Assembly: GCA_002104905.1 (NCBI GenBank)
Contig: MCFE01000087.1
Span: 1 to 64,000, forward strand
From: Basidiobolus meristosporus CBS 931.73
Lineage: Eukaryota > Fungi > Basidiobolomycota
Length of the DNA: 64,000 nt
Reading direction: 5' to 3'
Part shown: positions 8,317 to 55,952 of the stretch, in pieces
How the letters are laid out: every line of letters starts with the position of its first letter
How positions within the stretch are numbered: position 1 is the stretch's first letter
The notes under the pieces: model-generated
The model's input: the letters and a program-made list of their open reading frames with translations, nothing else
The model's database searches: none
What the model was told of the DNA's origin: nothing
Position numbers and translations under genes: made by a program

Positions 8317-8387
8317 TGCGCCGTCCGGGAATCGAACCCGGGGCTAAAGCTTGGGAAGCTTCAATTCTACCACTGTACTAACGGCGC
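8317..8387 (-). tRNA. tRNA-Gly(CCC) copy 1
   Basis: 71-nt cloverleaf GCGCCGT...ACGGCGC-A, anticodon arm GAAGC-TTCCCAA-GCTTT, T loop TTCGATT, T5 terminator just downstream. Unique upstream flank. Confidence 0.95.
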
Positions 8388-9346
8388 TCGGCTTGGCAAA
8401 ATCAATTTGGATATTTTGTAATTCCCCAAGCTCTTCGGTTGAAAATAGCTTAGATTCCCATCGACAGGGCCTTTGTACTATTCATTTATTTGAGGCACCA
8501 ACTCCAGTTTTGTAACCACGCATAATTCGTGGATGCATTATTGTAACTCTTCAAATCTTTAGCCAACTTCACGCAACTGTATGTACTCTAGGGTTTGGGC
8601 TAATGCAGGGCTTCCCTCCCGACTAAAAATAAACTTATTGATAACAATGTGTTCAGATTGATTTGAAACAATCATCATCGGGATTCATTGGTTTATTAAC
8701 AGCTAGATCAGCTTATTGGTGATGTGATGTTGGGGACGGTAATTTCCCCATGATTGTTTATGGGAGTTCGAAATTCGCCATTATCTAGAATTATGATCGG
8801 TCATGTAAATAGTCAAGAAAACACCCAATAAACCGATATATTCCTGGGAACTCTAGATCCAATAAATTGTGTACAAATCAAAACCATCAAGGCAAGCTGG
8901 ATGGGAATTTCTCAAGAAAATCAACCAAGTAGATCAAATTGATTAGGTGTTCGAATTCGCTTTTTCAGGACTTCAACTTTTTTTTGTACTTAGCAATTGG
9001 GTGGATACTCCCCTGCTTATTAGGCAGCCCCAAAATTTCGTTTTTTAATGAGTTGGTATTGAAAGGTAAATGAAGTCTTAGGTGAAAATCGGTCACCCAA
9101 AACCGTTGGCTGCATCAAATAGTTAGGTAGGTTACGACTTGTGTTTTTTTTATATAATAGCCGCCCTCATCATCAAGGACTTAGAATTTTTTACCCTCCT
9201 TCTTCTACCTGCATCGGACTTTTCCTTTTTACTGAAATTGTTCTGTAGAAGTCCACCCTACTTGACTTATTTCGCCCATCTTGTTCAACTCCAAATTTGT
9301 TTTGTTGAAGTTCCAAGTCGTCCCCTAGGCTAGTTGGGTTCTCATA

Positions 9347-12204
9347 ATGGTTGATTCCGAAGACGATATCCCTCTTGGTCGTAGAGCTCAAAGGAAGCTT
9401 CAGGTTTCCTCAGATTACGATTCTGATGACGATGTTCCGCTTCAAAAACGCTCCCAAGGCGAAGCTGCTATAAAACAAGAAGGTACCTATATCCTGAATT
9501 TTCCTTCCCAAATGGTCATTTGCTCTAGGATGCGGGTTTACCACAGTTCAATCGATCTTGATGCTAATTGCTAACGCGCTTCTTTTCCGTAGGGAGAGCT
9601 TCTGACAATAAAGGTCAGAATCTTGCCAATGGCACTAACGGTGTGAAGAGAGGTACAGAGGAGGAACAGGTAATACCTTATGTTTTGCTTTGTGATGACT
9701 TTGGGAGATCCAAATTGGGAAATCCCTTTATTTGTCAACCGATTGCTAAGGATACACCACATCCCACCAATGAAATTTCAAGCAGTATTAATACGAACTC
9801 TACTCTATACACCTGCTAATTTCCATTTCTAACCAAACTAGGCTACGCGTAAAAAAATCAAAACCGAAGATTCTTCTGATGACGAGCCTTTGGTAAGCGC
9901 ACGTCATATTTCCTCGCGGTGGCGCGTTTCGAGGTGTGCTAACCGAGTGACGTTTAGGTCAAACGCGTGTCCAAAGCTAAAAGCAAACCTGTCAAGACGG
10001 AGCCGGGTTCCAACACACCCGTTAGAAAGCGTGCCGCCAAGGTTAAGCAGGAGTCTGATGATGAAGACGTACCTTTGGCTAAGAAGTCTGCCACTAAAAA
10101 ATCCGAGCCTCGTGTAAAGAAAGAATCCACGCCATCCACTCCCACTGCTCGCGGAAGAAAGAAGAATGAAACCACCCCCAGTAAAGATAAGGGCAAGGTT
10201 AAAGAAGAAGAGGAGGAGGAGGTATACAAGTGGTGGGAAGCTGAAAATCAGGATAATACTATCAAATGGACCTCTCTGGAGCACAATGGTGTATTGTTCC
10301 CTCCGGACTATGTCTCACACGGAGTAAAGATGAAGTACGACGGCAAACCTATCGAGCTGTTGCCAGAAGCCGAGGAAGTGGCCAGTTTCTTTGCTACCTT
10401 ACTCGGCTCAGATCATGGCAACAATCCAACATTCCAAAAGAACTTCTTTAACGATTGGACTGAGTTGATGAAGAAGGTTTATGAGGAGAAAAAGCTACCA
10501 CCGCCACCCATCAAGGAGTTCGCCAAGTGCGATTTTACTCCTATGTTTGACCACTTCCAAAGAGAGAAAGAGGCCAAAAAGGCAATGACCAAGGAAGAGA
10601 AGGCAGAAATCAAGGCCCAGAAATTGGTCATTGAAGAGAAATACGGTTATGCAATTCTAGATGGTAGAAGAGAGAAGGTTGGCAACTTTAGAATTGAACC
10701 CCCTGGTCTATTCCGTGGACGTGGTGAGCATCCCAAGACGGGATGTTTGAAGCAGCGTGTGCAACCAGAGCAGGTGACCATCAATATCGGCAAGGATGCC
10801 AAAATCCCCGAAGCACCTCCTGGTCACCAATGGGGCAAGATTATTCACGACAACACGGTTACATGGCTTGCAATGTGGAAAGAGAACGTCAACGACAACA
10901 TCAAGTATGTTTTCTTGGCAGCTGGCAGCTCCCTCAAGGGGCAGAGTGATCTAAAGAAGTTCGAGAAGGCCAGAAACCTCAAGAAACTGGTCGGAAAGAT
11001 CAGACGTGATTACATGGAAGAGCTGAAGCACAAAGTGATGGCCACCAGACAGCGCGCCACTGCATTGTACCTTATTGATCGATTGGCACTCAGAGCTGGT
11101 AACGAGAAGGGTGATGATGAAGCCGATACCGTTGGTTGTTGCTCGCTTCGATATGAGCATATTGAGCTAGTCCCCCCTAATACCGTCGTGTTTGACTTCT
11201 TGGGTAAAGATTCTATCAGATACTACAACGAAGTCAATGTCGACGAACAGGTATTCAAGAACTTGAAATTGTTCAAGAAACCGCCCAAGGGAGAGGGTGA
11301 CGATTTATTCGATCGTCTTACTACTCAGTCACTCAACAAGCATTTATCTTCCCTTATGCCTAGTCTTACTGCTAAGGTATTCCGTACCTACAATGCGTCC
11401 TTCACCTTCCAAGATGAGTTGAAAAAGACCCCTGTCGATGGGACCATTGCCGAAAAGTTGTTAGCTTATAACCGCGCCAATCGACAGGTTGCAGTTCTAT
11501 GTAACCATCAACGGAGTGTCAGTAAGGCTCATGGTGCTCAAATGACTAGAATCCAAGACAAGTTACGAGCCCTCAAGTACCAGCGCCGTCGTCACAAGTA
11601 TCAGCTAGCTGCTATGGACCCTAAGCTGAAGAAAAAGCGGCCCGAGCTTTTCGAACCCGAATCGGACCTTGAGGAGGATTGGATTGAGGAGTATGAAAAA
11701 GATATGTTGGAAAAGGAGCGTGAAAAGATCAAAGCGAAGTTTGAAAAGGATAACCAGGCACTGAAGGACAACAAGGAGAAGCCACTACCACAATCTGAAC
11801 TGAAGGAATTACTCTCCAAGGTTGACGAGAAGGCCAAGGAGCTGAAGCAAGAAAAGAAAACTGGGGAAGTTTACGCTATCAAGAAGAATGCTACGGTTGA
11901 AAGACTTGAGACCGCCATCAGTAAACTTACCGAAAGGATTCTGACGACGAAGACCATGATGGTCGACAAGGATGAGAACAAGACTACTGCTCTTGGTACC
12001 TCGAAAATCAACTACATCGACCCTCGTATTTCTGCTGCTTGGTGCAAGAAGTACGATGTGCCTTTGGAGAAGATTTTCAACAAGAGTTTGAGAGAAAAGT
12101 TCAAGTGGGCCATGGACGTTGATGAGGATTGGGTAAGTCTCCATTGGTACGATGTGTTTGAATCATCCGATCTAACCTATTCTTTGTCATTTTAGGAATT
12201 TTAA
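9347..12204 (+). CDS. TOP1: DNA topoisomerase I (type IB), multi-exon
   Basis: KWTSLEHNG, EPPGLFRGRG, ALRAGNEK, AKVFRTYNAS and catalytic SKINYIDP motifs. Short 5' exons; terminal exon EF-TAA at 12196-12204. Confidence 0.97.
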
Positions 12205-12568
12205 AATGAACTTCTCGATCATCGGCTCACTCCACCCCGACCCTCCCTCAATTTTCCTTCTATTCCTTTATCTTTGACACCAACAGTTTTTAGAAACAGT
12301 GATTTATTCATCTTCAAGATCTCTACACCTCCGTTAAGTGATTCCCATCTTTTTTTTATACATAGTATTTATATTTGTTGTAGAATAAATCTTCACCACC
12401 TCGTCAACAAGACCCTACCTACGTGGAATGTTCGAAATGCGGCACCTAAATGGTAAAGAAATTCCTCGGCTGAGTAGAATACGTGATCCCATACTTCGAT
12501 TCACGGCGGGGGACGAGGCGAATCACAAGATGTCCACTAATTCCGCCGAAATCATGGGTGATCCCACA

Positions 12569-13065
12569 TGTGATGGGATTTCGCATGGAGTATATGTTGG
12601 CCCCATCCATCCCAACCACTCCTTACAACGCATTTTATTCACAATTTATCTAAAAGCACCTGTGTGAGGATGGTTCCGTGTAGGAAGTCGTCGATTAAGC
12701 ACTAGGCCGTATATAAATTGAAGATTCAAGGATCGAGTTGGGTGCGGTACTCTCACAAACTAGGCCTTCGTGTCTGTTGATGGGGAGGAGCGCAATAACT
12801 TGACCTACAACAAATACAATATGACTACAATCAGAGCAAATAGCCAACCAGATGGGATAAAAGAAAGGGATAATGGCAGTAAATCGAAAGAGTGCACGTG
12901 AACCATAAGGCAAGAGTGTATGTGGCTTTAACACTCAACATTGTGAGTAAGTGTGGGTTGTAGGCTATGGTTGCGAGGGTAGGATCATAAGAGTAACCAT
13001 AATATTGGGAAAGAGAAAAGGAAGATGTGCATGGGGTGAATGGGAAAAAATGCCCAAGAATTACA
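12569..13065 (-). mobile_element. LTR-like element, type G (497 bp)
   Basis: TGTGAT...ATTACA termini (consensus TIR TGTGAT/ATCACA). Ends 11 bp upstream of tRNA copy 2. Orientation inferred from the order TATA, AATAAA, TGG-starting flank. Confidence 0.65.
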
Positions 13066-13076
13066 CGAATATAGAG

Positions 13077-13147
13077 GCGCCGTTAGTACAGTGGTAGAAT
13101 TGAAGCTTCCCAAGCTTTAGCCCCGGGTTCGATTCCCGGACGGCGCA
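13077..13147 (+). tRNA. tRNA-Gly(CCC) copy 2
   Basis: Identical 71-nt sequence to copy 1. Confidence 0.95.
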
Positions 13148-13395
13148 TACCTCTGAACCATAATTTTTGAGAAACTCTAGGACCTCATACGGCCAAGATA
13201 AGGCTAGGCGCATGCACCATTAAATCTGTCATCATTTCATACAAGTTAGATCAGACCTCATATGACTAATGGACACGAACTGCCGGAAATCGGAAATCAT
13301 TCAACTAATGATTCACGGACGCATGCACCAACTTCGGCTCTTCGAAAATGATTTTATGCGGTTGATGCATATGATTAAAGAATTAATATTAGCTC

Positions 13396-13519
13396 TAACA
13401 CTCAACATTGTGAGTTTTAGGCTAAGGTTGCGGGGGTAGAGTTACAATAACAAAAATATCGGGAAACAGAAAAGGAAGATGTGCATGGGGTGAATGTGAA
13501 GAAATGCCCAAGAATCACG
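13396..13519 (-). mobile_element. Truncated LTR type G remnant
   Basis: Homologous to the tRNA-proximal end of LTR-G (12928-13065); ends AATCACG 11 bp before tRNA copy 3. Confidence 0.65.
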
Positions 13520-13530
13520 CGAATATAGAG

Positions 13531-13601
13531 GCGCCGTTAGTACAGTGGTAGAATTGAAGCTTCCCAAGCTTTAGCCCCGGGTTCGATTCCCGGACGGCGC
13601 A
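13531..13601 (+). tRNA. tRNA-Gly(CCC) copy 3
   Basis: Identical 71-nt sequence; T5 run downstream. Confidence 0.95.
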
Positions 13602-14661
13602 AAACCCCTTCATTTTTCACATTCTTATTCCTCAATTCTCTGTTACGCATTCCAATTTTGTGAAACTTTAGAGGTTACTGAGAGTGGGATCCTCGGCTTG
13701 AGGTGTCAATAAATCCTAGAAAAGTTATTCATCACATGTATATACCAACACTGTGTATTATATATATGTCTTTCCTGGCATGAGATGGCCATCTCCCTAA
13801 CTTCGATTTAACACCGCTGATCTCAAATCCATTAATTGCCAATATGATAATTGAAAGTTTGTTAATCCTGGTTAACTGTATTTCAACAAATCTAGTTTGC
13901 GTATTCATCCAGGCATCTTCGCACTTGGTTAGAGTTACAGAATTCTTAAGCTAAAGAACGGTTCACCTGAATGTCGAATGAAACGCTTCAGCTATAAACA
14001 CTGGACTCCCTTTGTGCATATATAGGTCTATATTTTCTGCTTACACTGATAGTGATTGTATTCTACATATATGGATCCACTTGCGAATATGAGAAAATAG
14101 GGAACGTTGGTGATTGCGAATTTATTGGTGCTTTTGGTCAAGGATTAAATTACTCAAAACTTTCTAAATCTTCTAAAGCTTGGAATATGCAATGCAGATT
14201 TGGAGTAATTAGAAAAGCATCAAAGTAATATTAGGAGTATCTTGATGAAGGGAAAACGAATGGTACGGCTGCATTGTTGGCATGATGAAGTTGTCTATGT
14301 CTGGAATTCGTCATTGACCAAGATTTGTGCATTTTATTCCACCAATTTTGTCTCAGAATAGGTAACTTGCACTTGACCTTCACTAATTCCAAGAATTAGC
14401 CAATATTTCATAAACGAAGTCTTAAGTAAATAACTCATAGCTTAGCAATAAGCGAAGTAGAATCTTGCGTTACATGAATGGTATAGGTGTAAACTGAATA
14501 TTTACAACAGTAAACTCGCAATGTGTGCCCAATTTTTGCAGTATAAAGGCCACGGTGAAAGTTGTCTGATATATGACAAATTTGGTTGAGTGCATATTTG
14601 TAATCCTTGGTCAGTGATTACCCATACATGTGGATGATTCCACTACAATAATAGTGCAGAT

Positions 14662-14731
14662 TTATCATTGGTAAGGCGGAGAAATTGAAGTTTCCCAAGT
14701 TTAAGGCCACACATGATTGCTGGATGGTAGA
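14662..14731 (+). pseudogene. Heavily decayed tRNA-Gly(CCC) relic
   Basis: AATTGAAGTTTCCCAAGTTT (about 14683-14702) aligns to AATTGAAGCTTCCCAAGCTT. Flanks are collinear with many transitions; acceptor and T arms are destroyed. Confidence 0.55.
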
Positions 14732-15337
14732 AGTTTTGCATTTCCCTATGAAGCATTGTTCCTTACTATGTAAGTGCTTGTTCGATCAAAACCTTGTACA
14801 AGTATATATACTACCTTTACACCCAACAGATCATCAAGTAAGAATAACATAATCTTCTTGCTCCTCAGTCAATCCAGTATCTCCAATACTGCCACAACAG
14901 GCCCAACGTCGCTGTCTGTCCAACATGGAAATGTAATCTAATTGTAGGAAAGAAAGACATGTAGCATGCATGTGAATATAATATAGTGAATTCATTCACT
15001 TTTAGATAGAAGTACATTCTTTAACTCAAGAAGTTTGTAATTGCAAAAAACAATCAAGAGTGAGAGGATCAATGCAGATAATGATAATCATCAGGTTAAC
15101 AGTTCTCATATTGGCAGCAATCCAGTTTGAGAGGTATGGTGTAAGATAAAATATCAGGGACATGACTATTGTATTTCCAAAAATATTACTGTATAAGGAG
15201 CATAATTTCAGATGGGTAAAGATTCTTCTAGTGTTGAAACATGTAGTGAATACGCATTCTAAAAATGAAGCCATGGGTATACAAATCATTACATCCTTGG
15301 AAAATTACCACAGTATTGGTTCAAAAAAGAAATGATT

Positions 15338-15408
15338 TGCGCCGTCCGGGAATCGAACCCGGGGCTAAAGCTTGGGAAGCTTCAATTCTACCACTGTACT
15401 AACGGCGC
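15338..15408 (-). tRNA. tRNA-Gly(CCC) copy 4
   Basis: Identical 71-nt sequence; T6 terminator. Confidence 0.95.
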
Positions 15409-16454
15409 CTCTGTATTGATTTTTAGTTCTCTGAAATAAACAATTAATATATGGCCAGGTTTGCGCGATGTTCCTTTCAGTGGAGATCATGAATATCACC
15501 AGTCCTATCCTATTGATAAAGATGATTTGAGGTTTGCTTTTCATTGCTAGCTGATTTTGGCTACTTCTACCTAGTAGGCTTTGTTCAATAATACTTGACC
15601 TCAGTTAAATTCCATATCACAGCAGCATTGATGTAAAATTTTCGAGATTTTTAAACGTATGAGCCAGCAAACATCCTAATATTGTACAAAATACTGTATC
15701 AACGCACAAACCAGACTTCTTGTAATCACACGTATTGTTTAATAAAGCTTCATATTTACTGCATGGACAACAGATAGTCATGATCAGAGTATGTACTCAT
15801 TAGAAAGGTTGACAGAGAGAAGGAATGCATTGACGTATTTCTATTCACTAGATGAGGCGAATTACAAACGAGGTTTGTTGAAATCCTGGTGAACATGAAT
15901 GTCGAGTAGCTTTACCAGCTGATGATACTGATATATTTGTATTCAGGAGAACAAAAGGCATTTATATATAGCTATTACTGATAAATCGACGTTCAAATTT
16001 ACTGCTATTTAAAGTTGGGTATTCAATCGTTTGGACGGTGTTTAGAATATGCGAGGAAAATTTGGCAAAGTTAGTATGAAGATGATATAATGAGATATAT
16101 TGGACAAAACAGACCCACTTCTTTTTTCTTGTTGTCAATCTTCCCCTTACCAACCTGGTATGCTAGATCAAGTTGTTACTCGACCTCGATATTTCACACT
16201 AGATTTCCGGAAACCCTAACGAGCATGCTATATGGGACCATTATCCATCCAAATAGGAAATCATGCTAAACCAAAAGGATTGACAAAAGTAGGCTGACAA
16301 ATAGTTGGAAATTGTCTAAAAACATGAAGACTTACTGATCCTGCAACATGATTCCTTCTATTGAAAATTCAGAAGCTCCTCTAAAAAATCAGAGTAATAT
16401 CGGAGAAACTGCATCGAGCTGAGGTTTGCCATCGAGGAAAGAAAAGGAAGACGT

Positions 16455-16525
16455 TGCGCCGTCCGGGAATCGAACCCGGGGCTAAAGCTTGGGAAGCTTC
16501 AATTCTACCACTGTACTAACGGCGC
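16455..16525 (-). tRNA. tRNA-Gly(CCC) copy 5
   Basis: Identical 71-nt sequence. Confidence 0.95.
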
Positions 16526-16535
16526 CTCTATATTT

Positions 16536-16856
16536 TGTTATAGAGTAAGGAGTCAGTCGATGTCAAGTGACATCAACGCGTACAAAGACGACTTAGCAGC
16601 CAGGGAAAAGCAAAACAAGACAAATCACCAGACTCACAATAAGGTATAAATACCAATCAAACAATCAAATAAAGGGAGAAGTTTGGTTAGAAGCAGGAAG
16701 AGCGGTAGAAACGAATATTATTTTGAATATATTTCTACTAGTCACCATCCTAAACTCTGAAGAGATATTCTTACACTACTCCATCGAATCTACGAGATAA
16801 CATACACGTTATCTAATTCCGTACTCTTTAAAGGCATTACTCTTCAGGTACGTAAC
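16536..16856 (+). mobile_element. LTR type A (about 320 bp)
   Basis: Starts TGTTATAGAGTAAGG 10 bp upstream of tRNA copy 5; collinear with 40155-40476. Confidence 0.85.
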
Positions 16857-17601
16857 GAATCGATTAACGACCACGATAGACCTTAACCAAAATATGATGA
16901 TTTCAAAACCGAATTTTACAGTGCATTAGGATGTAGCGCCTATATCTTTCAGTTTATGTAAAAGATAGTAGTTCTCACTATACGTAGTATAAATTGGTGC
17001 TCTGAGTGTGGCTCATAAGTAGCTGCAATAAGCAAGGAGCTACACCATTGCTATCTCTGTGTGAAGTTTTGTAGTAGCTTAGATACATAATTCTGGCATT
17101 TTTACACATGTTATAAACTATTTTGAATGGCAAGTTCTCTTCTGCATTAGTTGAAGGTTTAACGATATCCCAATACGGTGTAACAATGGTTGGAGCATGT
17201 TTTAACTGACTTGTAATCCACTTCATATTCACACTGTGGAAATCTAGCTGAGAACAAATCAATAAACCTGCTGGCCATTCATTGGTCGAGCTAAGGGCTA
17301 TGGAAGTTGTGGAGTAGATCATTGTTGATGGCTGATCATAGCCCCCAGAGTACATTGGTGTTACTAAAAGGAGATTTCCAATTTCCAAATAATGGCCGCT
17401 TAGTACCAGAACCCTCTATCACCAGTTTCAAATAGACAGCGTGAGCTAAGACTCATGAACCCAGGGTTTATAAATAGGATTCGGATTAATGTCAAGAAAC
17501 ACACAAAGATTCATAGTGCAAAGAAATATATGTATAACGATGAAAAAATTGACAAAAAACAACACAACAGGGTGTTGACTGGCTGTGGTAGCTTTGTATA
17601 A

Positions 17602-20718: not shown

Positions 20719-20789
20719 TGCGCCGTCCGGGAATCGAACCCGGGGCTAAAGCTTGGGAAGCTTCAATTCTACCACTGTACTAACGGCGC
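20719..20789 (-). tRNA. tRNA-Gly(CCC) copy 6
   Basis: Identical 71-nt sequence. Confidence 0.95.
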
Positions 20790-20800
20790 CTCTATATTCG

Positions 20801-44300: not shown

Positions 44301-44409
44301 TGATGGATTGGTTTTTGTCAAATACTCTTGTATAAGGTTCTGGGTGTTGAGCAACTGTTGTACAATATCATTCTTGCTCATTGTATTATATGGTTCTCTG
44401 GCAGTCGCT

Positions 44410-45346: not shown

Positions 45347-46273
45347 TTTTCATCTCTCTTCTGTTTTGGACACTCGTAATTTGGTCGTATCTTTCTGCAA
45401 TCATGTAGGTCTCCTTAAATGAGCTAGGATTTTGAAGCTCTACCTCTCTTCTAGTTGCCTTCATAAGTCCACGTGTGTACCGATCAAGTATCTCATCTTC
45501 AGCAATTCCCTCAATATCCAATAGAATACTCTTGAATTGGTTAGCGAAATTATTAATTGTTTCCTTCTGAACTAGCCGTACAAGTTTGTCTCTGGCACGC
45601 TTAGTTGCTGTTACGAGCTTGAATTCGGTCCTCAATTTTTGTTTGAACCAATTCCACTGTTCAACTTCAACTTCATAACCTTCTTGGACTCTCTTCAAGT
45701 GAGACCTCCATGATAACAACGCTTGTCCCCTGAACAGACTTGATGCGTAATCCACCATTTGTGACTTACTAACGTTTGTAAATTTCAGGTGCTTTTCAAC
45801 TTGGAAAATCCAAGAATCCACATTTGATTTTCCTTCAAACGTGTCAGGCTTTACTAACTTTGCGTGATCGGACCCCATACTTCCATATGCCTTCCAGATA
45901 TCTTCTGTTGTAGGCAAGTTCTCTTGCGCACCATATTGCGCCTTTAGCCACTGGTTTCCTTCATTTAATTCTTGCTATTGCTCGCGTAGCAATGCATTGA
46001 TGTCTTTTCCAGAGCTACATCCTTTGGTACTCTTGCTATTGGGAGAACCGCCTTTTGTGTTGCTGCTATCCAAGTGTTATGAACTCCGGGTTGTTCCTAT
46101 TCCTTTGTTTGATGTAATCAAGTCTGCCTTTATTTGGCCTGCGATCAACTATTTAACACATTGTTTCATATCTGGCCGTCTATTTGCATATACTTGAGTG
46201 TTATTTGGTGCTGGCGCCTCTGTATATGCCTAGACCTTTAGTTCGCTCAGGTCAGGTTTCAAGCTATTATTAC
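45347..46273 (-). mobile_element. 5' end of gypsy element type E: LTR 46075-about 46273, PBS-like TGGATAGCAGC, gag fragment
   Basis: gag KLVKPDTFEGKSNVDSWIF, homologous to elements B and C; LTR is the reverse complement of 45122-45346. Confidence 0.8.
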
Positions 46274-46279
46274 TTGTAA

Positions 46280-46499
46280 TGTTACGCTCGTAGAGGGAAA
46301 TCCCGGCTAAACAGTAAATCTCTTGGGATTCCGGTGAGAGTAAGAGTTGATCCAGGATGCAAGGGAGAAGATACTTTATTCGTGTACAAGTCTATCTGTA
46401 ATAGTTATTCATGGTGTGCTTTATATGCAGTGTGCTAAATTAAGTTTTAGTGATAAATTAGTAATGGATAGGGTTTCTGGTATACTTTACCCTGTAACA
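46280..46499. mobile_element. Solo LTR type D
   Basis: TGTTAC...TGTAACA; homologous to 46828-47136. Confidence 0.7.
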
Positions 46500-46501
46500 A
46501 G

Positions 46502-46824
46502 TGTTATGTGCTTAAAGAGTAATGTCCTTTAGAGAGTACAAAAATGGATAACGTGTATGTTATCTCGTAGATTCAACGGGGTAGTGTAAGAATATCTCTT
46601 CAAAGGTTAGGGTGGTGACTTGTAGAAATAAATTCCAAGTAATATTTGTTTCTACCGCTCTTCCTGCTTCTAACCAAACTTCTCTCTTTATTTGATTGTT
46701 TGACTTGTATTTATACCTTATTGTGAGTCTGGTGATTTGTCTTGTTTTGCTTTTCTCTGGCTACTAAGTTGTCTTTGTACTCATTGGTGTCACTTAACAT
46801 CAAGTGACTCCTTACTCTGTAACA
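46502..46824 (-). mobile_element. Solo LTR type A
   Basis: TGTTAT...TGTAACA; reverse complement of 40155-40476. Confidence 0.85.
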
Positions 46825-46827
46825 AGT

Positions 46828-47136
46828 TGTCATGCTCATTGAAGAAAATCTTAGTTAAGCAGTGTATCTTTTGGGATTCTGGATAGGGTAGAGTTGATCC
46901 AGGTTGCAAGTAAGAAGATACTTTATTTGTGTACAAACCTGTCTGCAATTGTTATTCATAGTGTGCCTTTTATACTGTGTGTGCTAATTAGGTTTCAGTG
47001 ATAAACTAGTGATAAATTGATGCTAGATAGGGTTTTGGTCAGAGTAACTCTATTTGATTGCCTTATATCCATACAGATGGTTGTCTTTTGCAGGGGGCCT
47101 ACCACTTATCCTAGTGGTATATTTTACCCTGTAACA
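46828..47136. mobile_element. Solo LTR type D (longer variant)
   Basis: TGTCAT...TGTAACA; shares the GAGTTGATCCAGG...GATACTTTATT core with 46280-46499. Confidence 0.7.
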
Positions 47137-47139
47137 AGA

Positions 47140-50100
47140 TGTTATGATATTCAGGTCTGGTTCTCCCACTTTGCTGGTGTAACAAGACCTGTCTTTATTT
47201 TTACCACAGGATCTGCTTTTAACACAATTCCCAATTGCTTGCATAGACTATTGTCTCAAGTTTGCCCAACAGTGAGCATATAATGAAGCATTATCACATG
47301 GTGACATAACTATATATGTTGTGATCATCTGAATGTTCTGGTTGGGTTTCAGACTGATAACATTTTCCCCTTCTTCAGTTGATTCTTCTCCTAAAGAATC
47401 TTCAACTTTAAAATACCAAATTTTCTTTTCAGGAAATGGTCCCCCTTGAAGGGCTACTTGGTGGACCAATGTTATCTGTATTTGCTCATCAAGGTCTACT
47501 AGCTGATATGTTGAAAACAGCATAACTCTTCTAATTGTGAATGGTCCCATCCAGTATGGTTGAAACTTCTTGTGGTCTTCCTTACGCATTAAGACTCTTG
47601 TTCCTATCTCAAATTCTTGACTGCTTGCATTCTTGTCATTGTTGTAAAATTTTGTAATTCCTCCTAAATACTCACCTAACTTAGTCACTTAGAGCATTAC
47701 CTTCAAATCCTAGAGAATACTGACCAAATTCCTTGTTGGGATTTACTTCAAATATTTTCACCAAAATATCAGGTACCCAGAATATGAGAATTAGAAAAGT
47801 TGTCCAAACAGCCCCAAACTTTGCACAGATGTTCTTGAGACCTTCCTAACCCTATTTTACATGTTTGTTATGCCAAGACCATGTAAAAGTATTAATACTA
47901 CTTTTACATTCAATAAATCATCAAGTGAAAACCACATAATCTACTTGTTCTCCCAATCACTTCCAATATCTCCAAGACTCTTACAACAGTCATAACATAA
48001 GATCATTTGCTGGCCTTGGTTTTCAAGTTGCTTCAGCACTTCTTCCCTCCTATGATCTAGACTTTCCAATTCTCTGATCTTTCATTCTGCTTCATCATCT
48101 TCATCATCAAGGTCCCAAAGATCTGGATGCAATGTGTCACCAGGTATCATGGGTTCCCTCCCATAGACAAGATAAAAGGGCAAGTATCCTGTAGCTATGC
48201 AAGACTGTATTTGACATGCAAATAGTGCTTGCCGTACAAAATCATCCCATTTATGTTGTGCCCCCTGAACATAAATTGTCAACATTTGGCTAAAGAGTCC
48301 ATTGAAGTGTTCATTAACCCCATTTGTTCTGGGGTGAAAGGCAGATGTTTTTAAATGTTTGATCCCCTGTAATTCTATGTAATTCTTCATGATTCCTTCA
48401 ATGAAGTTTTGTCCTCTATCTGTGAGAATTTCCTCAGTGCATCCAAACTGTAAAGTATTATCTTATACAGAAAAATTGCTACTTCTTTTGCGGTAGCTTT
48501 TCTTATTGATTGGGCAATTGGCCACTTTGTTGTGTGGTCAATTGCCATTAATATCCCCTTGTTACCTCTCCTAGTGTTTGTAAGTCTTCCAATGAAGTCT
48601 AAACTCCAGCTACTAAATGCTGGGACTTGGGGTAACAAATGTAGTGATGCAGCCTGCTGCTTCCTGCTTTTTATTAACTGACAGTTAGGGCAGAATTGTA
48701 TGGCCAGTGCAATATTTTCTGCCATATTTGGCCACTGGTTAGCATACACAGACAATACAGAATTTCTTGGTCTTGATATTTTCTGCACAATACTTCTTCA
48801 TTAACTTGGAACTTATCAAGCTCTTATAATACTAACTCATTGACTTCTATAGTTGTTCCCTCAGGGAAGGTCTGGTTGCAACAGTACTCCACCTACTGCC
48901 CAAGATAAGGCATTTGTTGTCAAATAAAAGATTCTTGTGAAATCAGTACTTTTCAATACTGGTATGTTCAATAAAGCTTGCTTCAACCCTTGGGATGCTA
49001 CTTTACAGTTTGCTTCTGGAATTATTCTTGCCACTACATCATCACTGAATGTAGGTGTACTCCATGAGACATAAGTTTTCTTTTTAGCTAAGACAGTGTT
49101 TTATGCTGCTAATTTGACATCTTGGCTCTTTGTTGGTTGGATTAATAACTTGAGTGTCTTTACCAATACTTCAGAGATGTAATTATCACTTGATCCAATG
49201 TCTAAAATAACTTTCACTGGTTGACTACTAATTTCCACCAGCCACTGAATTACTGGCTTTGTTGGTTCTTCTATTTGCCAATTAAACTCTTCTACCATGT
49301 GTAAGATATGTTGTTCTTTTATTGCATTCAACATTTCTGCAGAGTCTTCTACTTCCACTTTGAACAGGTTATCCTTCTTACACTTAGAACATTCATAAAA
49401 TTGATGGCCTTCTTTTTTGCAATTGGAACACAGATTGTGTTTCATGCAATATTCTTTAGTTTTTTTCTTATTTTGATCCAATGTTTTGGCAGATTCTTGT
49501 CCTTCTTTTCTACCTGCTTAGATATTGCCAAACATAATCTGTTTATATCTTTCTGCCATCATATGTGCTTCTCTAAATGTTTGTGGGTCATGAAACTCCA
49601 CTTCTTTTCTTGTTGATTTTTTTAAACCACAAACATAACAATCAAGTATCTCATCCTTAGAGATACTGTCAATATCCAACAGCAGATTTTTGAAGTGGCT
49701 AGTATAACTACTAACTGTTCCTTTTTGGACTAACTTAGCAAGTTTATATCTGGCTTGCTTTGTAGCTGTTATTGGTTTAAACTCTGTTACTGATTCTTGT
49801 TTGAATTCCCTCCATATCTCAATTTCATCTTCATGACCTTCATTAGACCTTCTTAAATACAATCTCCACCACAATAATGCTCTTCGGATCAGACTTGAAG
49901 TGTATTCAACTTTCTGAGACTGACCAACATTTGTGAACTTCATATACTTCTCAACTTGAAATATCCAAGTGTCCACATTTGATTTTCCTTCATAAGTTTC
50001 AGGCTTTGTCAACTTTACCCAATTAGATCCTGGACTTCCATATGCCTTCAAAATATCTTCTTTTGTAAGCAAATCTTCTTGTGCACTATATTGTGCCTTC

Positions 50101-50473
50101 AGCCACTGGTTCTCTTCCTTTAATTCTTGTAATTGCTCTCTTAGCAATGCATTTAAGTCTTCACCAGGGATACTACCTTCAGTACTTTTACTAGTACTCA
50201 TCTTCTCTTCTTTTTCCAGAGGATCTACAATGAATTGTTGCTACCAAATGCTATGATATTCAGGTCCGGTTCTCCCACTTTGCTGGTGTAACAAGGTCTG
50301 TTTTTATTTTTAGCGCTGGATCTGCTTTTAACACAATTCCCAACTGCTTGCATAGACTATTGTCTCAAGTTTGCCCAACAGTGAGCATATATTGAAACAT
50401 CATCACACGGTGATATAACTACATATGTTGTGATCATCTGAATGTTCTGTTTGGGTTTCAGACTATTGTAACA
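47140..50473 (-). mobile_element. Degenerate Ty3/gypsy element B (LTRs 50249-50473 and 47140-47362; gag, Zn knuckle, PR, RH remnant, IN; RT deleted)
   Basis: Paired LTRs of about 225 bp; PBS TGGTAGCAACAA (iMet-like); PPT before the 3' LTR; CSNCKKEGHQFYEC; VILDIGSSDNYI; WSLDFIG; WMGPF. U3 end lies 11 bp from tRNA copy 10. Confidence 0.9.
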
Positions 50474-50484
50474 AAAATGTAGAG

Positions 50485-50555
50485 GCGCCGTTAGTACAGT
50501 GGTAGAATTGAAGCTTCCCAAGCTTTAGCCCCGGGTTTGATTCCCGGACGGCGCA
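50485..50555 (+). tRNA. tRNA-Gly(CCC) copy 10, T-loop variant (TTTGA), possibly impaired
   Basis: One C>T at the invariant B-box C56. Confidence 0.85.
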
Positions 50556-51121
50556 TCACCTTTTTCATTTAATCAATGGCATTCCTCGAACCGTCACACT
50601 ACCTCCCAAATTTTGGAGCAACTTTAGAATTTCCAGTAGAAGGGAATCCATGCACTTGTACCATTTCAACGCCGGTTTTCCGTACCATCAAAGTGAAGAG
50701 ATTTAAATTTATGAATCATCAATCTTCCGAAAACACACTGGACCAATTGAAATAATAGGTCGAAATGTGTATGTTTGTAATAGAGTAGTAAGTTAAAGAG
50801 CGGAGTGGCCTTGGTATTCCGGTAAACTTAAGGATCAACTGAGCACAAGTTCCATCAGAGCCCTAAAACTAGGAAATATTGTGGAAACCCACAATAATAG
50901 CAGAAATCATTCCAAATCTTGAAGGAGCTATGTAATTGACAAGAAAAATGAAGTTGGTGTATTTTGAGCACAAACGGGTCAATGCTGAGATCACCCAACT
51001 AGGCTTTGATCCACTGGTGATTTTACAGTTTCTCCAAATGTTGTGTTTTGATGGATATGATATACTCTTGGTTGTACGGTATTCATTTTCGGAGTGCCCG
51101 TAAACGGGAGCAAAAGATTGT

Positions 51122-51192
51122 TGCGCCGTCCGGGAATCAAACCCAGGGCTAAAGCTTGGGAAGCTTCAATTCTACCACTGTACTAACGGCGC
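51122..51192 (-). tRNA. tRNA-Gly(CCC) copy 11, two C>T changes, possible pseudogene
   Basis: Sense AGCCCTGGGTTTGATT versus consensus AGCCCCGGGTTCGATT. Confidence 0.8.
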
Positions 51193-51203
51193 CTCTGTAT
51201 TTG

Positions 51204-54200
51204 TGTTATGAAATCCAGGCCAGTTCCCCTCCTTCTGTTTGGTGTAACAAGGTCTGTCCTTTATTTTAGCGTAGGATCTACTTTTTATACATTTCTCAAT
51301 CATTTGCATACAACTTGTCTTACTTTAGCCCATCAGTCTTTGATCATCTTTGATGATTTTTGGTGTTGACGCATCTCTATATGCAACAACTTGCTGCCTG
51401 TTCTGGTTGGGATTCAGACTTTCATAACATTTTCCCCTTCTTCAATTGATTCTTCTCCTGAAGAATCCTCGTCTTTATGGTACCAAACCTTCTTTTTGGG
51501 GAATGGTCCGCCTTGCAATGCTATTTTTAGTCTGTCTTGGTGGACTAGCGTTTTCTGAACTTGGCCACTCATATCTACGAGCTGATATGTTGAGAATGGC
51601 ATTATTCTACTTACAACAAATGGGCCCATCTAGTACGGTTGAAACTTCTTGTGGTCCTCCTTTTGTATTAGAACCTTTGTTCCAACTTCCAGCTCTTGGT
51701 CACCTACATTTTTATCGTATCGCAATTTCATTTGTTGACCTTGACTTTCAAGTCTTTTTATCACTTCCTCTTGCTTGTGGCCTAACGCCTCCAATTCTTG
51801 TATTCTCCATTCTGCTTTATTGTATTCATTGTTGAGATTCCAGAGGTTTGGCCGTACTGTGTCACCTGGGATTTTTGGCTCTTGTCCATATACTAAGTAG
51901 AAGGGTGTATACCCTGTAGGTACATGGCATCATATTTGACACGCAAAAAGTGCCTGTTGCACGGATTCATCCTGTTTGTGGCATGCACCTTGGACATAGG
52001 TTGTTAGCATTCTACAAAACAACCCATTAAAACGTTCATTCACCCCATTAGTTCTAGGGTGAAATGCCAATGTTTTTAAGTGTTTAATTCCTTGCATCCT
52101 AACATAGCTTCCCATTACGCCTTCAATAAAGTTTTGCCCTCTTTTGGTAAGTATTTCTTCTGGGCAACCAAACTGTAACAGTATTTCTTCATACAGGAAC
52201 GTAGCTACCTCTTTTGCTGTAGCTCTTCTTATTGCTTTAGCAATTGGCCACTTTGTGGTGTGGTTTATAGCAGTTAGTATCCATTTGTTACCCTTTTTGT
52301 TTCTGGCAACCTTCCAATGAAGTTTAAACTCCACCAACTAAATGCTGGGACTTGTGGTAATGGGTGAAGTTGTGCCTCTTGTTTTCTTCCCGGCGTGGCT
52401 AACTGACAGTTGGGGCAGAACCAAATAACTTTTGCAATATCTTGAGTCATATTTGGCCACCAGGCTTGAGGCTTCAGTTAGTTTAAGACTCCTTGCACTC
52501 CTAAATGGCCATATGCCTGATGATATTTGCAGATTAGATCTGCGCGCAATATATGTGGGCAAAACAGGATTTCTGGGTCTTGTATTTTTCTGTACAAAAC
52601 TTCTTCATTTATGCAAAACTTGTCTGCTTCCTGTCTTACTAATTCTTTAACTTCTGCAGGGATCTCTTCTGGGAAGGTTTGCTCCTGTAGGTATTGAGGT
52701 ATTAGAGTTGGCCAATCCAACACATCTATCATGAGGATTGTGCTTTCTATTATCTGTTCTTGTGTCTCCTCTTCCATCCTGGAGAGTGCATCGGCTACTT
52801 TATTTGAGCTACCTTTTATGTAGGTGATCTCAAAATTGAATTGTTGCAAGTATTCTATCCAACGCAGCATTCTTCTTGATAAGGTTTTTTGTGTATTAAC
52901 AAATCTTAGACTTGCATGATATGTCTGGATAATACACTTTTTTCCTTCTTGGTAGCATCGCCACACTTTCAAACAAACAATTATTGCCAATAACTCTTTT
53001 TCGTGTGTTGGATAATTATGTTCTGCTGCTGAGAGTTTTCTACTTTTGAACGCAATTGGATGCTCCTGTTTGTCCTGATATTGTGACAGTACTCCCCCTA
53101 CGGCCCATAGTGAAGCATCGGTTGTTAAATAGAAGGTTTTTGAATAATCCGGGCTTTTCAACACTGGGGCGTTTACTAATGCAACCTTCAACTGTTGGAA
53201 TGCAACTTCACATATTTTTGACCAAGTGCACATCCTTTCTTGCTTTAGTAAGTCCATCAGTGGCGCTGCTATCTGTGCAAAGCCTGCTATAAACTTTTGG
53301 TAATATGATGCTAACCCTAGAAACAATTGTAGCTTGGTTATCGAGTTTGGGTATGGCCACTCTTCTATTATCTTTACTTACTTATTGTCAACTTTCAGGC
53401 CTTCTGTGGTAATCACATGTCCTAAATATTCAATTTCTTTTGTATTGAACTGACATTTTTCCTTGTTTGCTACTGATTTTTCTCTTTGCAAAATATCAAA
53501 GACAATTCACAGATGGTCTTGATGTTCTGCTAGTGTTTTGCTATATATTAATATATCATCTAGGTATACTAATATAAATTGATCTAGATATTGATGAAAA
53601 ATGCTATTCATCAATGTCATAAAGGTGGCTAGTGCGTTGGTGAGTCCAAAACTCATTACCACAAACTTGTAATGGCTGTAGCATGTGCAAAATGCTGTTT
53701 TCTCAATATCACCTTCTTGAATTCAGATTTGGTAGTAGCCACCTTTCAGATCTATCTTTGAAAACACCCTTGCACCATTCAGGTTGTCAAACAGTTTGTC
53801 AATTTGGGGGAGTGGGCACTTGTTTTTGATTGTTGCTGAATTTAGGGCTTGATAGTCCACACACAAACAAAGAGACCCCTCCTTCTTCTTAACAAACAAT
53901 ACCGGTGCTTCAAACAGCAATTTACTTGGTCTTATATAACCTTTCTCTAACAATTCAGCTAATTGTTTTTTTAATTCTTGTAGCCCCAATGGACTCATCC
54001 AGTAAGGCTGTTTTGACACCAGTGAGCTGTTTTCTAGATAAATCTTGTGATCCACACTTCTTTTTGGTGGTGAGCCTTTGAGTACTCTGAACACATCTTG
54101 GTACTCATCCAAGATACTTTGGATATCCTGCATGTTGTTGGTTTACTTGGTGTCTTCATCTAGAATGCTGTATATAAATTCAACATTGCTTTTGTCTACT

Positions 54201-54901
54201 TTCCTTGCTGCTTTAGAAAGTTGTGACTTTCTAATTACAAGTACCTCCTCTTCTTTTAGCAGTTCTGTGTTTGGTTTACAGATTACCTGCCACCTCCCTT
54301 CCTTATATACTGCCACTTCTTGCATTTGCCAATTGATGACAGGATTTTGTTTGTACAATTTTAGAATTTTAGGTATTTTTCAACCTGAAAATCCAAGAAT
54401 CCACATTTGACTTCCCATCAAATGTATCAGGCTTAGCTAACTTTACATGACCGGATTCCAAACTTCCATATGCCTTCAGAATATCTTCTTTAGTAGGCAA
54501 CTCTTCCTGTGCACTATACTGTGCTTTTAGCCACTGGTTCTCTTCTTTCAATTCTTGTAATTGCTCTTGCAGCAATGCATTAATGTCTTCACCAGGGCTG
54601 CTTTCTTTAGTACTCTTGCTAGTACTCATTTTCTTGTAGTTTGGAGGATTATTTGTTGTTTTGCTGCTACCAAATGTTATGAAATGCAGGCCAGTTCCTG
54701 TCCTTCTGTTTGGTGTAACAAGGTCTGTCCTTTATTTTAGCGTAGGATCTACTTTTTATACATTTCTGGATCATTTGCACACAACTTGTCTTACTTTAGC
54801 CCATCAGTCTTTGATCATCTTTGATGATTTTTGGTGTTGACGCATCTCTATATGCAACAACTTGCTGCCTGATTCTGGTTGCAATTCAGACTTTCATAAC
54901 A
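51204..54901 (-). mobile_element. Degenerate Ty3/gypsy element C (LTRs 54675-54901 and 51204-51429; gag N-term, RT, RNase H, IN; gag core and PR deleted)
   Basis: Paired LTRs of 226/227 bp; PBS TGGTAGCAGCAA (54661-54672); PPT GAAGAAGGGGAAA; RT YLDD region; RH TDASLWAVGGVL; stops and frameshifts. Confidence 0.92.
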
Positions 54902-54907
54902 AAAATA

Positions 54908-55234
54908 TGTTACATACTTAAAGAGTAATGTCCTTTAGAGAGTACAAAAAGGGATAATGTGTATGTTATCTTGTAGATTTGATGGGGTAGTGTAAGAATA
55001 TCTCTTTAAAAGGTTAGGGGGGTGACTTTGTAGAAATATATTCAAGCTAATATTTGTTCCTACTACACTCTTCTGCCTATAACCAAAACTCCCTTTTTAT
55101 TTAGTTGTTTGTTTGGTATTTATACCTTATTGTGAGTCTGGTGATTTGTCTTTGATTTGCTTTTCCCTGGCTACTAAGTCATCTTTGTATGCGTTGATAT
55201 CACTTAACATCGAGTGACTCTTTACTCTGTAACA
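54908..55234 (-). mobile_element. Solo LTR type A with 5-bp TSD AAATA
   Basis: AAATA at 54903-54907 and 55235-55239; ends 10 bp upstream of tRNA copy 12. Confidence 0.9.
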
Positions 55235-55244
55235 AAATACAGAG

Positions 55245-55315
55245 GCGCCGTTAGTACAGTGGTAGAATTGAAGCTTCCCAAGCTTTAGCCCCGGGTTCGA
55301 TTCCCGGACGGCGCA
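55245..55315 (+). tRNA. tRNA-Gly(CCC) copy 12
   Basis: Identical consensus 71-nt sequence. Confidence 0.95.
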
Positions 55316-55881
55316 ACGATCTTTTGCTCCCGTTTACGGGCACTCCAAATGTTGTGTTTTGATGGATATGATATACTCTTGGTTGTACGGTATTCATTTT
55401 CGGAGAAACTGTAAAATCACCAGTGGATCAAAGCCTAGTTGGGTGATCTCAGCATTGACCCGTTCGTGCTCAAAATACACCAACTTCATTTTTCTTGTCG
55501 ATCACATAGCTCCTTCAAGATTCGGAATGATTTCTGCTATTATTGTGGGTTTCCGCAATATTTCCTAGTTTTAGGGCTCTGATGGAACTTGTGCTCAGTT
55601 GATCCTTAAGTTTACCGGAATACCAAGGCCACTCCGCTCTTTAACCCACTACTCTATTACAAACATACACATTTCGACCTATTATTTCAATTGGTCCAGT
55701 GTGTTTTCGGAAGATTGATGATTCATAAATTTAAATCTCTTCACTTTGATAGTACGGAAAACCGGCATTGAAATGGTACAAGTGCATGGATTCCCTTCTA
55801 CTGGAAATTCTGAAGTTGCTCCAAAATTTGGGAGGTAGTGTGACGGTTTGAGGAATGCCATTGATTAAATGAAAAAGGTGA

Positions 55882-55952
55882 TGCGCCGTCCGGGAATCGA
55901 ACCCGGGGCTAAAGCTTGGGAAGCTTCAATTCTACCACTGTACTAACGGCGC
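55882..55952 (-). tRNA. tRNA-Gly(CCC) copy 13
   Basis: Identical consensus 71-nt sequence. Confidence 0.95.

Follow-up and report, generated by a model that had tools for sequence, protein, structure and literature searches.

We analysed a 64-kb window of the genome of the fungus Basidiobolus meristosporus CBS 931.73 (assembly GCA_002104905.1, contig MCFE01000087.1, positions 1 to 64000). The window carries 13 genes for the glycine transfer RNA (tRNA) with anticodon CCC, tRNA-Gly(CCC). The genes were located with ARAGORN, lie on both strands, and are labelled t1 to t13 according to their order along the window. Their positions are 8317, 13077, 13531, 15338, 16455, 20719, 38445, 39513, 40075, 50485, 51122, 55245 and 55882. 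All 13 match the Rfam tRNA model RF00005, with scores of 53.8–59.2 bits against a cut-off of 29 bits. Neither ARAGORN nor Rfam found a tRNA other than Gly(CCC) in the 64 kb. The genes form three sub-clusters. The first (t1–t6, 8.3–20.8 kb) lies around and after the Top1 gene, the second (t7–t9) is at 38.4–40.1 kb and the third (t10–t13) at 50.5–56.0 kb. A block of host genes without tRNA genes occupies 21–38 kb.

Alignment of the genes showed that 11 of the 13 are identical over 71 nt. The two others are t10, with a single change (B-box C56 to T), and t11, which has C56 to T and C48 to T. The changes at C48 and C56 are C-to-T changes at CpG dinucleotides (CpG to TpG). The A box and B box, as read from the alignment, are intact in 11 copies. 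In these the B box is a perfect GGTTCGATTCC; t10 and t11 read GGTTTGATTCC because of C56 to T, and their B box is not intact. A run of four to six T residues begins 3–17 nt past the 3' end of every gene, and an encoded CCA follows none of the 13. These results bear out a preliminary description of the window, which had listed 11 identical and two near-identical genes in both orientations, each with a T4–T6 run nearby. Further decayed copies were not found in the window; apart from the 13 genes, blastn-short (word size 7) returned only chance matches, of up to 17 nt. Genes t2–t13 all keep a 10-nt leader (consensus AAATAYAGAG), from which only t1 differs.

Comparison with Basidiobolus ranarum gave evidence of both ancestry and constraint. 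The product of the Top1 open reading frame (ORF) is 91% identical to B. ranarum Top1, and the next match is 68% identical. That of the TPS ORF is 100% identical to a protein of B. meristosporus CBS 931.73 itself, DNA of contig MCFE01000087.1 matches the window at 100%, and exact-sequence look-ups of the fasciclin and Gag-integrase ORFs returned no record. In B. ranarum, the fasciclin and Top1 genes flank a tRNA-Gly(CCC) gene that has the orientation of t1 (8317–8387, minus strand). Gene t1 has the consensus sequence, a unique leader and unique flanks, and would be the ancestral copy at this place. A second B. ranarum tRNA-Gly(CCC) gene lies directly past TPS, on the same strand as t13, in the order TPS, small nucleolar RNA (snoRNA), tRNA. 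Synteny in a related species, which the preliminary description had named as informative, is thus present at two positions. The leaders of both B. ranarum genes are similar to that of t2–t13. Both B. ranarum tRNAs are identical to the window consensus at 71 of 71 positions; the Top1 coding DNA of the two species is 78.5% identical. For 71 neutral sites to remain unchanged, the probability is ~3e-8 with the divergence of the Top1 coding DNA, and ~1e-4 if the 12% divergence seen in older paralogue flanks is applied. Hence, purifying selection is sufficient to explain identical genes in diverged flanks, and these comparisons indicate that such selection acts on the tRNA. The identity between species also argues that some copies, at least, would be functional.

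Self-comparison of the window showed that many of the genes share DNA far outside the tRNA. The longest shared unit, module S, reaches 865 nt. Copy 1 (12526–13390, plus strand) consists of a snoRNA gene (12620–12811), a 265-nt spacer, t2 (13077–13147) and a 243-nt 3' flank. Copy 2 (20476–21340, minus strand; snoRNA 21056–21247, t6 20719–20789) is inverted and 97.2% identical to copy 1. Copy 3 (38942–39583, plus strand; snoRNA 39056–39247, t8 39513–39583) is 96.4% identical, and copy 4 (41876–42247, minus strand) is ~95% identical and holds the snoRNA (41942–42133) without a tRNA. Directly after copy 1 there is a partial and older tandem copy (13392–13601, plus strand, 87% identical) that lacks the snoRNA and ends in t3 (13531–13601). 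The t4 unit (15235–15417, minus strand; t4 15338–15408) has a 9-nt leader and a 103-nt 3' flank in common with t7 (96%). The t7 unit (38436–38618, plus strand; t7 38445–38515) has this t4-type 3' flank, and its proximal 36 nt upstream resemble module S. Genes t8 and t9 (40075–40145, minus strand) are convergent and ~490 bp apart, and form an inverted repeat (96%) made up of leader, tRNA and 58 nt of 3' flank. In the third sub-cluster, cassette 1 (50474–51203) contains t10 (50485–50555, plus strand) and t11 (51122–51192, minus strand), which converge across a 566-bp spacer. Cassette 2 (55235–55963), with t12 (55245–55315, plus strand) and t13 (55882–55952, minus strand), is an inverted copy of cassette 1. 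The cassettes are 92.7% identical by BLAST, or 94.7% identical if a small inversion is excluded. This inversion concerns a ~60-nt segment at about 55345–55405, in the 3' flank of t12, which has short inverted repeats at its ends. It is inverted with respect to both the t11 flank and the allele on a second contig described below, and is private to the t12–t13 arm.

Across these units, homology reaches up to 550 nt on the 5' side of the gene and 240 nt on its 3' side. Since this is hundreds of nucleotides beyond the RNA polymerase III (Pol III) transcript, the copies are DNA-level duplications and not retroposed RNAs or short interspersed nuclear elements (SINEs). Flank divergence defines at least three age classes (about 3–4%, 5–7% and 12%), to which older copies with residual similarity in the 3' flank only must be added. 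The preliminary description had sorted the 3' flanks into the groups 2/6, 4/7, 8/9, 10/13 and 11/12, with t1, t3 and t5 on their own, and had called the groups unrelated. We reproduced the groups, but the term unrelated went too far. The flanks of {5}, {8,9}, {10,13} and {11,12} have a weak but significant similarity to each other (z = 4–7 against shuffles). For t5 itself (16455–16525, minus strand, consensus sequence), the 3' flank is a distant relative of the t8/t9 and t10/t13 flanks. Such distant kinship points to an older layer of duplication too.

The two flanks of a gene do not always have the same relatives. Upstream of t8 the DNA groups with t2, t3 and t6, and is snoRNA module rather than long terminal repeat (LTR) sequence; downstream it groups with t9 and t5. 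The switch is inside the leader and tRNA. Gene t7 has a weaker form of the same mosaic pattern. Identical tRNA bodies acting as sites of crossover or conversion would account for flanks of one gene with different relatives, and recombination or gene conversion is evident from the mosaic t8. The proposal in the preliminary description that selection or gene conversion constrains the Pol III unit thus holds, given both the mosaic t8 and the identity at 71 of 71 positions in B. ranarum against 78.5% for Top1. We also considered whether the C56 to T change common to t10 and t11 was proof of gene conversion. This was rejected; both are CpG transitions in a decaying arm, and the chance of parallel hits is ~0.14 as a rough estimate. 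As a separate observation, the segment 38942–42247 contains nested pairs of inverted repeats, symmetric about ~40,621. The outer pair (38942–39313 and 41876–42247) is snoRNA module and the inner pair (40156–40438 and 40805–41087) belongs to an LTR family, LTR-A. The intervening DNA of the two arms is unrelated, and a tRNA relic was not found in the right arm.

The snoRNA gene in module S was missed in the preliminary account of the flanks, which did not recognise that part of the shared flank is a conserved gene. The RNA is 192 nt long. Three copies match the Rfam family Afu_182 over its full length (1–195), with 66.0–66.1 bits against a cut-off of 65 bits. The fourth (12620–12811) is just under this cut-off, and has one substitution in the 195-nt alignment. 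There is also a weak secondary match to the H/ACA snoRNA snR10 in Rfam. Alignment of the four window copies with three from B. ranarum, a small sample, supports a hairpin-hinge-hairpin-ACA fold. In this fold, two hairpins contain 49 pairs, of which two have compensatory changes, several have one-sided G-U changes and none is broken, and an ACA is found near the 3' end. Thus, with a conserved snoRNA gene in it, module S is a snoRNA gene plus a tRNA gene, and not a transposon.

The snoRNA is locally multicopy in both species, with four copies in the window (listed above) and at least five on two B. ranarum contigs, L001 (281–472, 4743–4928 and 9001–9186) and L005 (11948–12133 and 16133–16235). 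It is ~84% identical between B. meristosporus and B. ranarum. In both species it precedes tRNA-Gly(CCC) by 183–266 nt on the same strand, and the sequence of the spacer is not conserved. For the two B. ranarum tRNA genes seen, the distance to the snoRNA, upstream and on the same strand, is 183 or 225 nt. More B. ranarum snoRNA copies occur past Top1, at a contig end and in the position of module S and t2, and in two other places. The occurrence of the snoRNA–tRNA module in both species indicates that it predates the species split and was already dispersed in the region. The arrangement is not that of dicistronic tRNA–snoRNA genes, in which the tRNA comes first and the passenger RNA follows directly downstream in one Pol III transcript; here the order is reversed and the spacer is 183–266 nt long. 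With the snoRNA upstream and the spacer not conserved, the tRNA promoter cannot drive the snoRNA. One possibility raised by the order of the two genes is that the tRNA gene might serve to end or process the snoRNA transcript. The B. ranarum contig syntenic to the t7–t9 region ends at a Snf7-like gene, just short of the t7 position. On B. ranarum contig L004 (8426–9589), a 259-aa gene is called between the tetraspanin and Snf7-like genes, and there is no counterpart at 36.7–37.1 kb of the window.

Part of the locus is represented a second time in the same assembly. We compared MCFE01000759.1:21489-38906 (L003), hereafter the second contig, with 48.7–64 kb of the window. It carries the SDF-AIP3-PIGBOS1-TPS block at 99.7% identity, and NCBI has two locus tags for an identical TPS protein. 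MCFE01000759.1 is either a haplotig or a recent large or segmental duplication. The two versions differ by an indel of ~875 bp at window position 58521, and the second contig has one tRNA pair where the window has two, and a full 5.1-kb element of a family that we call LTR-E. Thus, next to TPS there is one tRNA gene in B. ranarum, two on the second contig (one convergent pair) and four in the window (two pairs). A three-way alignment of the cassettes is near a star, with 10 private substitutions in t10–t11, about 10 and the 60-nt inversion in t12–t13, and seven on the second contig. Given the near-star tree, the extra pair and the split of the two contigs are of about equal age.

Retrotransposons of the Ty3/gypsy type surround the third sub-cluster. 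The ORFs in the zone 44–58 kb contain the Pfam domains Ty3_capsid, Retrotrans_gag, RT_RNaseH_2, Integrase_H2C2 and rve. Their LTRs end 9–11 nt upstream of 6 of the 13 tRNA genes (t5, t9, t10, t11, t12 and t13), and of the t12 equivalent on the second contig, where the full LTR-E element occupies the same site. LTR-A is ~325 nt long, has the termini TGTTAC...GTAACA and variants of these, and ends 9–10 nt upstream of t5, t9 and t12. The respective solo LTRs are at 16536–16857 (minus strand, 10 nt from t5), 40155–40476 (minus strand, 9 nt from t9) and 54908–55234 (plus strand, 10 nt from t12). A further LTR-A (40805–41087, plus strand) is inverted with respect to the copy at t9 and does not adjoin a tRNA gene. 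Three larger elements, B, C and D, have paired LTRs (92.6%, 96% and 89% identical, respectively), and each stops 11 nt short of the 5' end of a tRNA gene (t10 for B, t11 for C and t13 for D). Element B (47140–50473, minus strand) is a remnant with a gag ORF at 49518–50201, and element C (51204–54901, minus strand) is a remnant with a reverse transcriptase-RNase H ORF at 52478–53326. Element D (55964–58356, minus strand) is internally deleted and has a Gag-integrase ORF at 56108–58108.

The insertions are stacked. Moving outward from t10, element B is followed by LTR-E, LTR-A and LTR-E; the outer layers abut each other (46280–47136, plus strand; LTR-E 46280–46499, LTR-A 46502–46824, LTR-E 46828–47136). 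At t13, element D is followed by an LTR-A fragment (58359–58527, minus strand), an older layer that element D has displaced outward. At t12, LTR-A is followed by the LTR of element C. Only LTR-A at t12 has a clean target-site duplication (TSD) of 5 bp (AAATA/AAATA). Element C lacks a TSD, and for B, D and LTR-A at t5 and at t9 the TSD is ambiguous. At the ends of element C are the leaders of t11 and t12, in mirror orientation. Hence, element C is likely to be a recombination product of two elements and not a simple insertion. The largest and youngest duplications (module S, t4/t7 and t8/t9) have no LTR at their borders, so LTRs would contribute to the amplification without being its sole cause. 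The suggestion in the preliminary description that the genes are retrotransposon landing pads is confirmed as far as insertion sites are concerned, by stacked LTR termini 9–11 nt upstream of six genes. A role for tRNA-Gly(CCC) as the primer of these retrotransposons was rejected, as no LTR has beside it a stretch of at least 10 nt that matches the tRNA 3' end, although a shorter primer-binding site would escape this search.

Differences in CpG content divide the locus into domains. The observed/expected (o/e) ratio for CpG is ~0.7–0.9 over host genes and tRNA modules. From 40.2 to 55.2 kb it is 0.0–0.5, with a matching excess of TpG/CpA. This decayed, transposon-rich domain (40155–55234) has its edges on the 5' sides of t9 and t12, within ~11 nt of the 5' ends of these genes, and is interrupted by cassette 1 and snoRNA copy 4. 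Proceeding from left to right, CpG o/e is 0.76 in the t7–t9 block, 0.40 in LTR-A at t9, 0.06 in element B, 0.79 in cassette t10–t11, 0.26 in element C, 0.22 in LTR-A at t12, 0.92 in cassette t12–t13 and 0.78 in element D, which is thus undecayed. The ratio shifts on the 5' sides of four tRNA genes; the transition is sharp for t10 and t12, clear for t9 and soft for t11.

Copies of the same LTR have fared differently on the two sides of the domain edges. Outside the domain, 12 of 13 ancestral CpG sites in LTR-A are kept (9 of 10 at t5 and 3 of 3 in the 58.4-kb fragment). Conversely, 8 of 38 are kept inside (p = 8e-6), including 3 of 10 at t9, 1 of 10 at t12 and 0 of 8 in the inverted copy at 40805–41087. 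On the second contig, decay has affected the LTR-E element beyond the pair (CpG o/e 0.29) and left intact both the cassette (0.89) and the element resembling D (0.81). Element B has three CpGs left in its t10-proximal LTR and none in the distal twin. The snoRNA copy at 41876–42247, inside the domain and with no tRNA beside it, has kept all 13 of its CpGs, which contradicts a uniform spread of methylation across the domain. Cassette 1 is a CpG-retaining island in which decay has begun. Private changes of CpG type make up 6 of 10 in the t10–t11 arm (three of them inside the tRNAs) as opposed to 2 of 17 in the other two cassettes (p = 0.025). Two further observations concern CpG content. Over 3.3 kb at 46800–50100 (element B and the adjoining LTR-E) the o/e ratio is 0.00–0.09, far under the values for elements C (0.26) and D (0.78), so that decay has run very differently in these neighbouring members of one superfamily. 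Between t3 and t4, at 14400–15000, there is a small CpG-depleted patch (o/e 0.22–0.45) that has no repeat partner in the window and may be an old transposon relic.

For codon usage, we counted the 2,671 codons of five host ORFs in the window, 138 of which are Gly codons. GGG is the rarest Gly codon, as usage counts of the kind proposed in the preliminary description could reveal, and accounts for 13% of Gly codons (95% confidence interval 8–20%) or 6.7 per 1000 codons. Hence, there is no sign of a high decoding demand in this small sample. We found no tRNA census for Basidiobolus in the literature.

The explanation that we favour, and think probably correct, is that these genes are a nuclear multicopy family of tRNA-Gly(CCC), under local birth and death and built on an ancient snoRNA–tRNA module. 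The ancestral unit is an snR10-like H/ACA snoRNA gene followed, 183–266 nt later and on the same strand, by tRNA-Gly(CCC), present at several sites in the region before the species split. Segments of 0.2–0.9 kb bearing tRNA genes were then copied repeatedly within 48 kb, both in tandem (t2/t3) and inverted (t2/t6, t8/t9, and t10–t11 relative to t12–t13). Recombination or gene conversion, with the identical 71-nt bodies as the crossover zone, reassorted the flanks, and purifying selection holds the tRNA bodies identical. Ty3/gypsy-type LTR elements insert 9–11 nt upstream of the genes, presumably at the Pol III start, and pile up there. The LTRs might in turn supply dispersed homology that favours more rearrangement, as element C, between two leaders and with no TSD, could illustrate. 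Finally, t10 and t11, buried between silenced elements, are beginning to die by CpG-to-TpG decay that has reached the B box. On this explanation, we infer that copy number reflects the dynamic of duplication and loss more than the need to decode GGG.

Several points weigh against the birth-and-death explanation or limit its detail. The 3' flanks of the B. ranarum tRNA genes match no flank in the window (scores are under the shuffle threshold). These flanks being unalignable, it is gene order that identifies t1 and t13 as orthologues. The leader of t2–t13 is kept better than would be expected from the diverged 3' flanks; this could reflect extra constraint or conversion tracts. The difference of two versus four genes between the contigs may be either a gain or a loss, as the three cassettes are about equidistant. 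The duplications could have arisen by unequal exchange, by replication template switching at inverted tRNA pairs or by LTR-mediated exchange. A putative excess over decoding need is based on 138 Gly codons. The activity of individual copies, likewise, is deduced from their sequences and so is presumed.

Other accounts of the copy number fit less well. The copies may have been fixed because the cell needs much tRNA-Gly(CCC), for instance for highly expressed genes rich in GGG or because Gly(UCC) reads GGG poorly. Eleven copies with perfect A and B boxes and terminators, under purifying selection, are what such a dosage effect would produce. However, GGG is the least used Gly codon in the host ORFs, copy number differs between two versions of the locus in one genome and two copies are decaying, so that we regard amplification for dosage as quite unlikely. 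The same 11 intact genes, under selection as tRNAs, do not support the opposite suggestion, made in the preliminary description, of a cluster that serves as landing pads or boundaries and not for decoding. A further proposal is that the copies are RNA-mediated, either as retroposed tRNA transcripts or as heads of a tRNA-derived SINE. It would explain why the 10-nt leader is kept while the sequence farther upstream differs. Shared DNA, however, reaches far outside the transcript; upstream it takes in a snoRNA gene at 265 nt, and downstream it continues for over 100 nt past the terminator. In addition, the trailers up to the T run differ among groups and the terminator comes directly after the tRNA; there is no SINE body, A-tail or flanking duplication; and every copy is a full cloverleaf (54–59 bits). 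An RNA origin thus has next to nothing in its favour. Equally hard to credit is that a few genes were inflated to 13 through misassembly of repeats, the artefact named in the preliminary description as a ground for dismissing the 13 copies. The region is rich in repeats, and the assembly does hold two near-identical contigs for part of it. Yet each copy has its own diverged flanks, with paralogue flanks 87% to 97% identical and not 100%, the second contig is an independent version of part of the locus, and an independent B. ranarum assembly confirms the gene order and two of the tRNA positions.

Three accounts give the transposons or their silencing a leading part. In one, the genes, and convergent pairs above all, are a selected array of chromatin barriers, kept because TFIIIC and TFIIIB halt transposon-directed methylation or heterochromatin before it reaches host genes. 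The coincidence of the domain edges with the 5' ends of t9 and t12 (~11 nt) fits a barrier, as do the CpG-retaining cassette t10–t11, the difference in CpG retention between LTR-A copies outside and inside the domain, the undecayed state of element D beyond the t12–t13 pair in both contigs and the three CpGs kept by the t10-proximal LTR of element B. Furthermore, a barrier function is established in yeasts for both tRNA genes and TFIIIC sites (PMC4502379, PMC12409998). However, insertion of LTRs at −10 makes transposon junctions coincide with tRNA 5' ends in any case. The snoRNA copy at 41876–42247 keeps its CpGs without an adjoining tRNA, as if only transposons were methylated. Decay of LTR-A at 9–10 nt from t9 and t12 means that protection does not extend upstream; the t10–t11 island is itself eroding; the transition at t11 is soft; and CpG decay is a historical proxy for methylation only. 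The preliminary suggestion of chromatin boundaries therefore has some indirect backing. Transitions in CpG decay at tRNA 5' ends are a footprint consistent with it, and methylation directed at transposable elements explains much of that footprint. These hints make a barrier role a hypothesis and not a finding, and we consider a selected barrier array unlikely. In another account, LTR exchange or aberrant integration duplicates the targeted tRNA genes, and safe landing sites reinforce themselves. Here, the LTRs at −9 to −11 of 6 of 13 genes, in stacks up to four deep, are relevant. So are the junction of two tRNA leaders by element C without a TSD, and the position of the extra window cassette, which is exactly at the insertion site of the t12 equivalent on the second contig, between elements B and C. 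Conversely, the module S copies (96–97%), t4/t7 and t8/t9 have no LTR borders and ends that vary from pair to pair, and B. ranarum already has several snoRNA–tRNA modules with no LTR at −10 in the contigs seen. Expansion driven by transposons is therefore very unlikely. The last and broadest account combines tRNA-Gly(CCC) genes, tRNA-targeting LTR elements and cytosine methylation in a self-organising unit. Elements would land at the Pol III start, become methylated and decay; Pol III complexes, convergent pairs above all, would shield the host genes; exchange between LTRs and tRNA genes would renew the copies; and the cluster would be kept as a safe haven and insulator rather than for decoding. 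We hold this to be speculative and on the improbable side.

The birth-and-death explanation places the locus among known systems. In primates and Drosophila, multicopy tRNA families evolve by local duplication, birth and death, and concerted evolution (PMC4981973). Like these families, the window has identical mature paralogues with diverging flanks, local origin, fast turnover and decay to pseudogenes (PMC4981973), and orthology can be traced only by means of synteny anchors, here fasciclin/Top1 and TPS. Unlike them, it has 13 copies of a single isoacceptor in 48 kb, which is unusual for a fungus, its founding unit includes a snoRNA and its copies die by CpG decay beside silenced transposons. 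In plants, the classic dicistronic tRNA–snoRNA gene has tRNA-Gly. The locus resembles such genes in the physical linkage between a small RNA gene and a tRNA gene, which are multiplied jointly. Here, unlike there, the snoRNA is upstream and the spacer of 183–266 nt is not conserved. Integration of Ty3 in Saccharomyces cerevisiae, and of Tj1 in Schizosaccharomyces japonicus, occurs within about 12 bp upstream of tRNA genes (PMC4600332, PMC5911963). In the window, similarly, LTRs of the form TG...CA end 9–11 nt upstream of the mature tRNA 5' end, the TSD is 5 bp where preserved and the same site has been hit repeatedly. As in S. japonicus, tRNA genes and transposons cluster together. The differences from Ty3 and Tj1 are that the host belongs to the Zoopagomycota, that at least five LTR families share the habit and that targeting is read from the sequence.

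With regard to chromatin, barriers formed by tRNA genes or TFIIIC are known from Schizosaccharomyces pombe and S. cerevisiae (PMC4502379, PMC12409998), and a human tRNA repeat at 1q23.3 that varies in copy number is a proposed boundary (PMC4041453). As in those cases, a domain that looks silenced has its edges at tRNA genes, and tRNA copy number is polymorphic. What differs is that the evidence here is a footprint in the DNA, confounded by transposon targeting, and that there is one non-transposon island with no tRNA. The Ser/Tyr tRNA cluster of Arabidopsis is in heterochromatin (PMC12308677), and the array in the window is also redundant and partly within silenced repeats. Unlike that cluster, a regular tandem repeat, it is irregular, has genes in both orientations and is mixed with host genes and LTR elements.

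The locus is a rich example of known processes in a little-studied fungal lineage and establishes no new principle. A single 48-kb stretch displays all stages of tRNA gene turnover, namely syntenic ancestral copies, young duplicates that are 96–97% identical, mosaics, a difference in copy number and two dying copies. It also extends targeting of the Pol III start site, as known for Ty3 and Tj1, to a fungus of the Zoopagomycota. With LTR-A on both sides of tRNA pairs, and very different CpG decay on the two sides, it amounts to a natural experiment on whether transposon silencing spreads less far where tRNA genes are in its path. It is thus convenient for testing both barrier function and tRNA gene birth. 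Its importance would rise if a selected function as insulator or landing pad, or a functional coupling of snoRNA and tRNA, proved to be true. Apart from the tRNA genes, the host-gene block contains an 800-aa ORF (22691–25093, plus strand) with no Pfam match and ~11 tandem units of 117 bp (39 aa) at 23085–24454. Around this repeat ORF, from 20 to 28 kb, GC skew is strongly negative.

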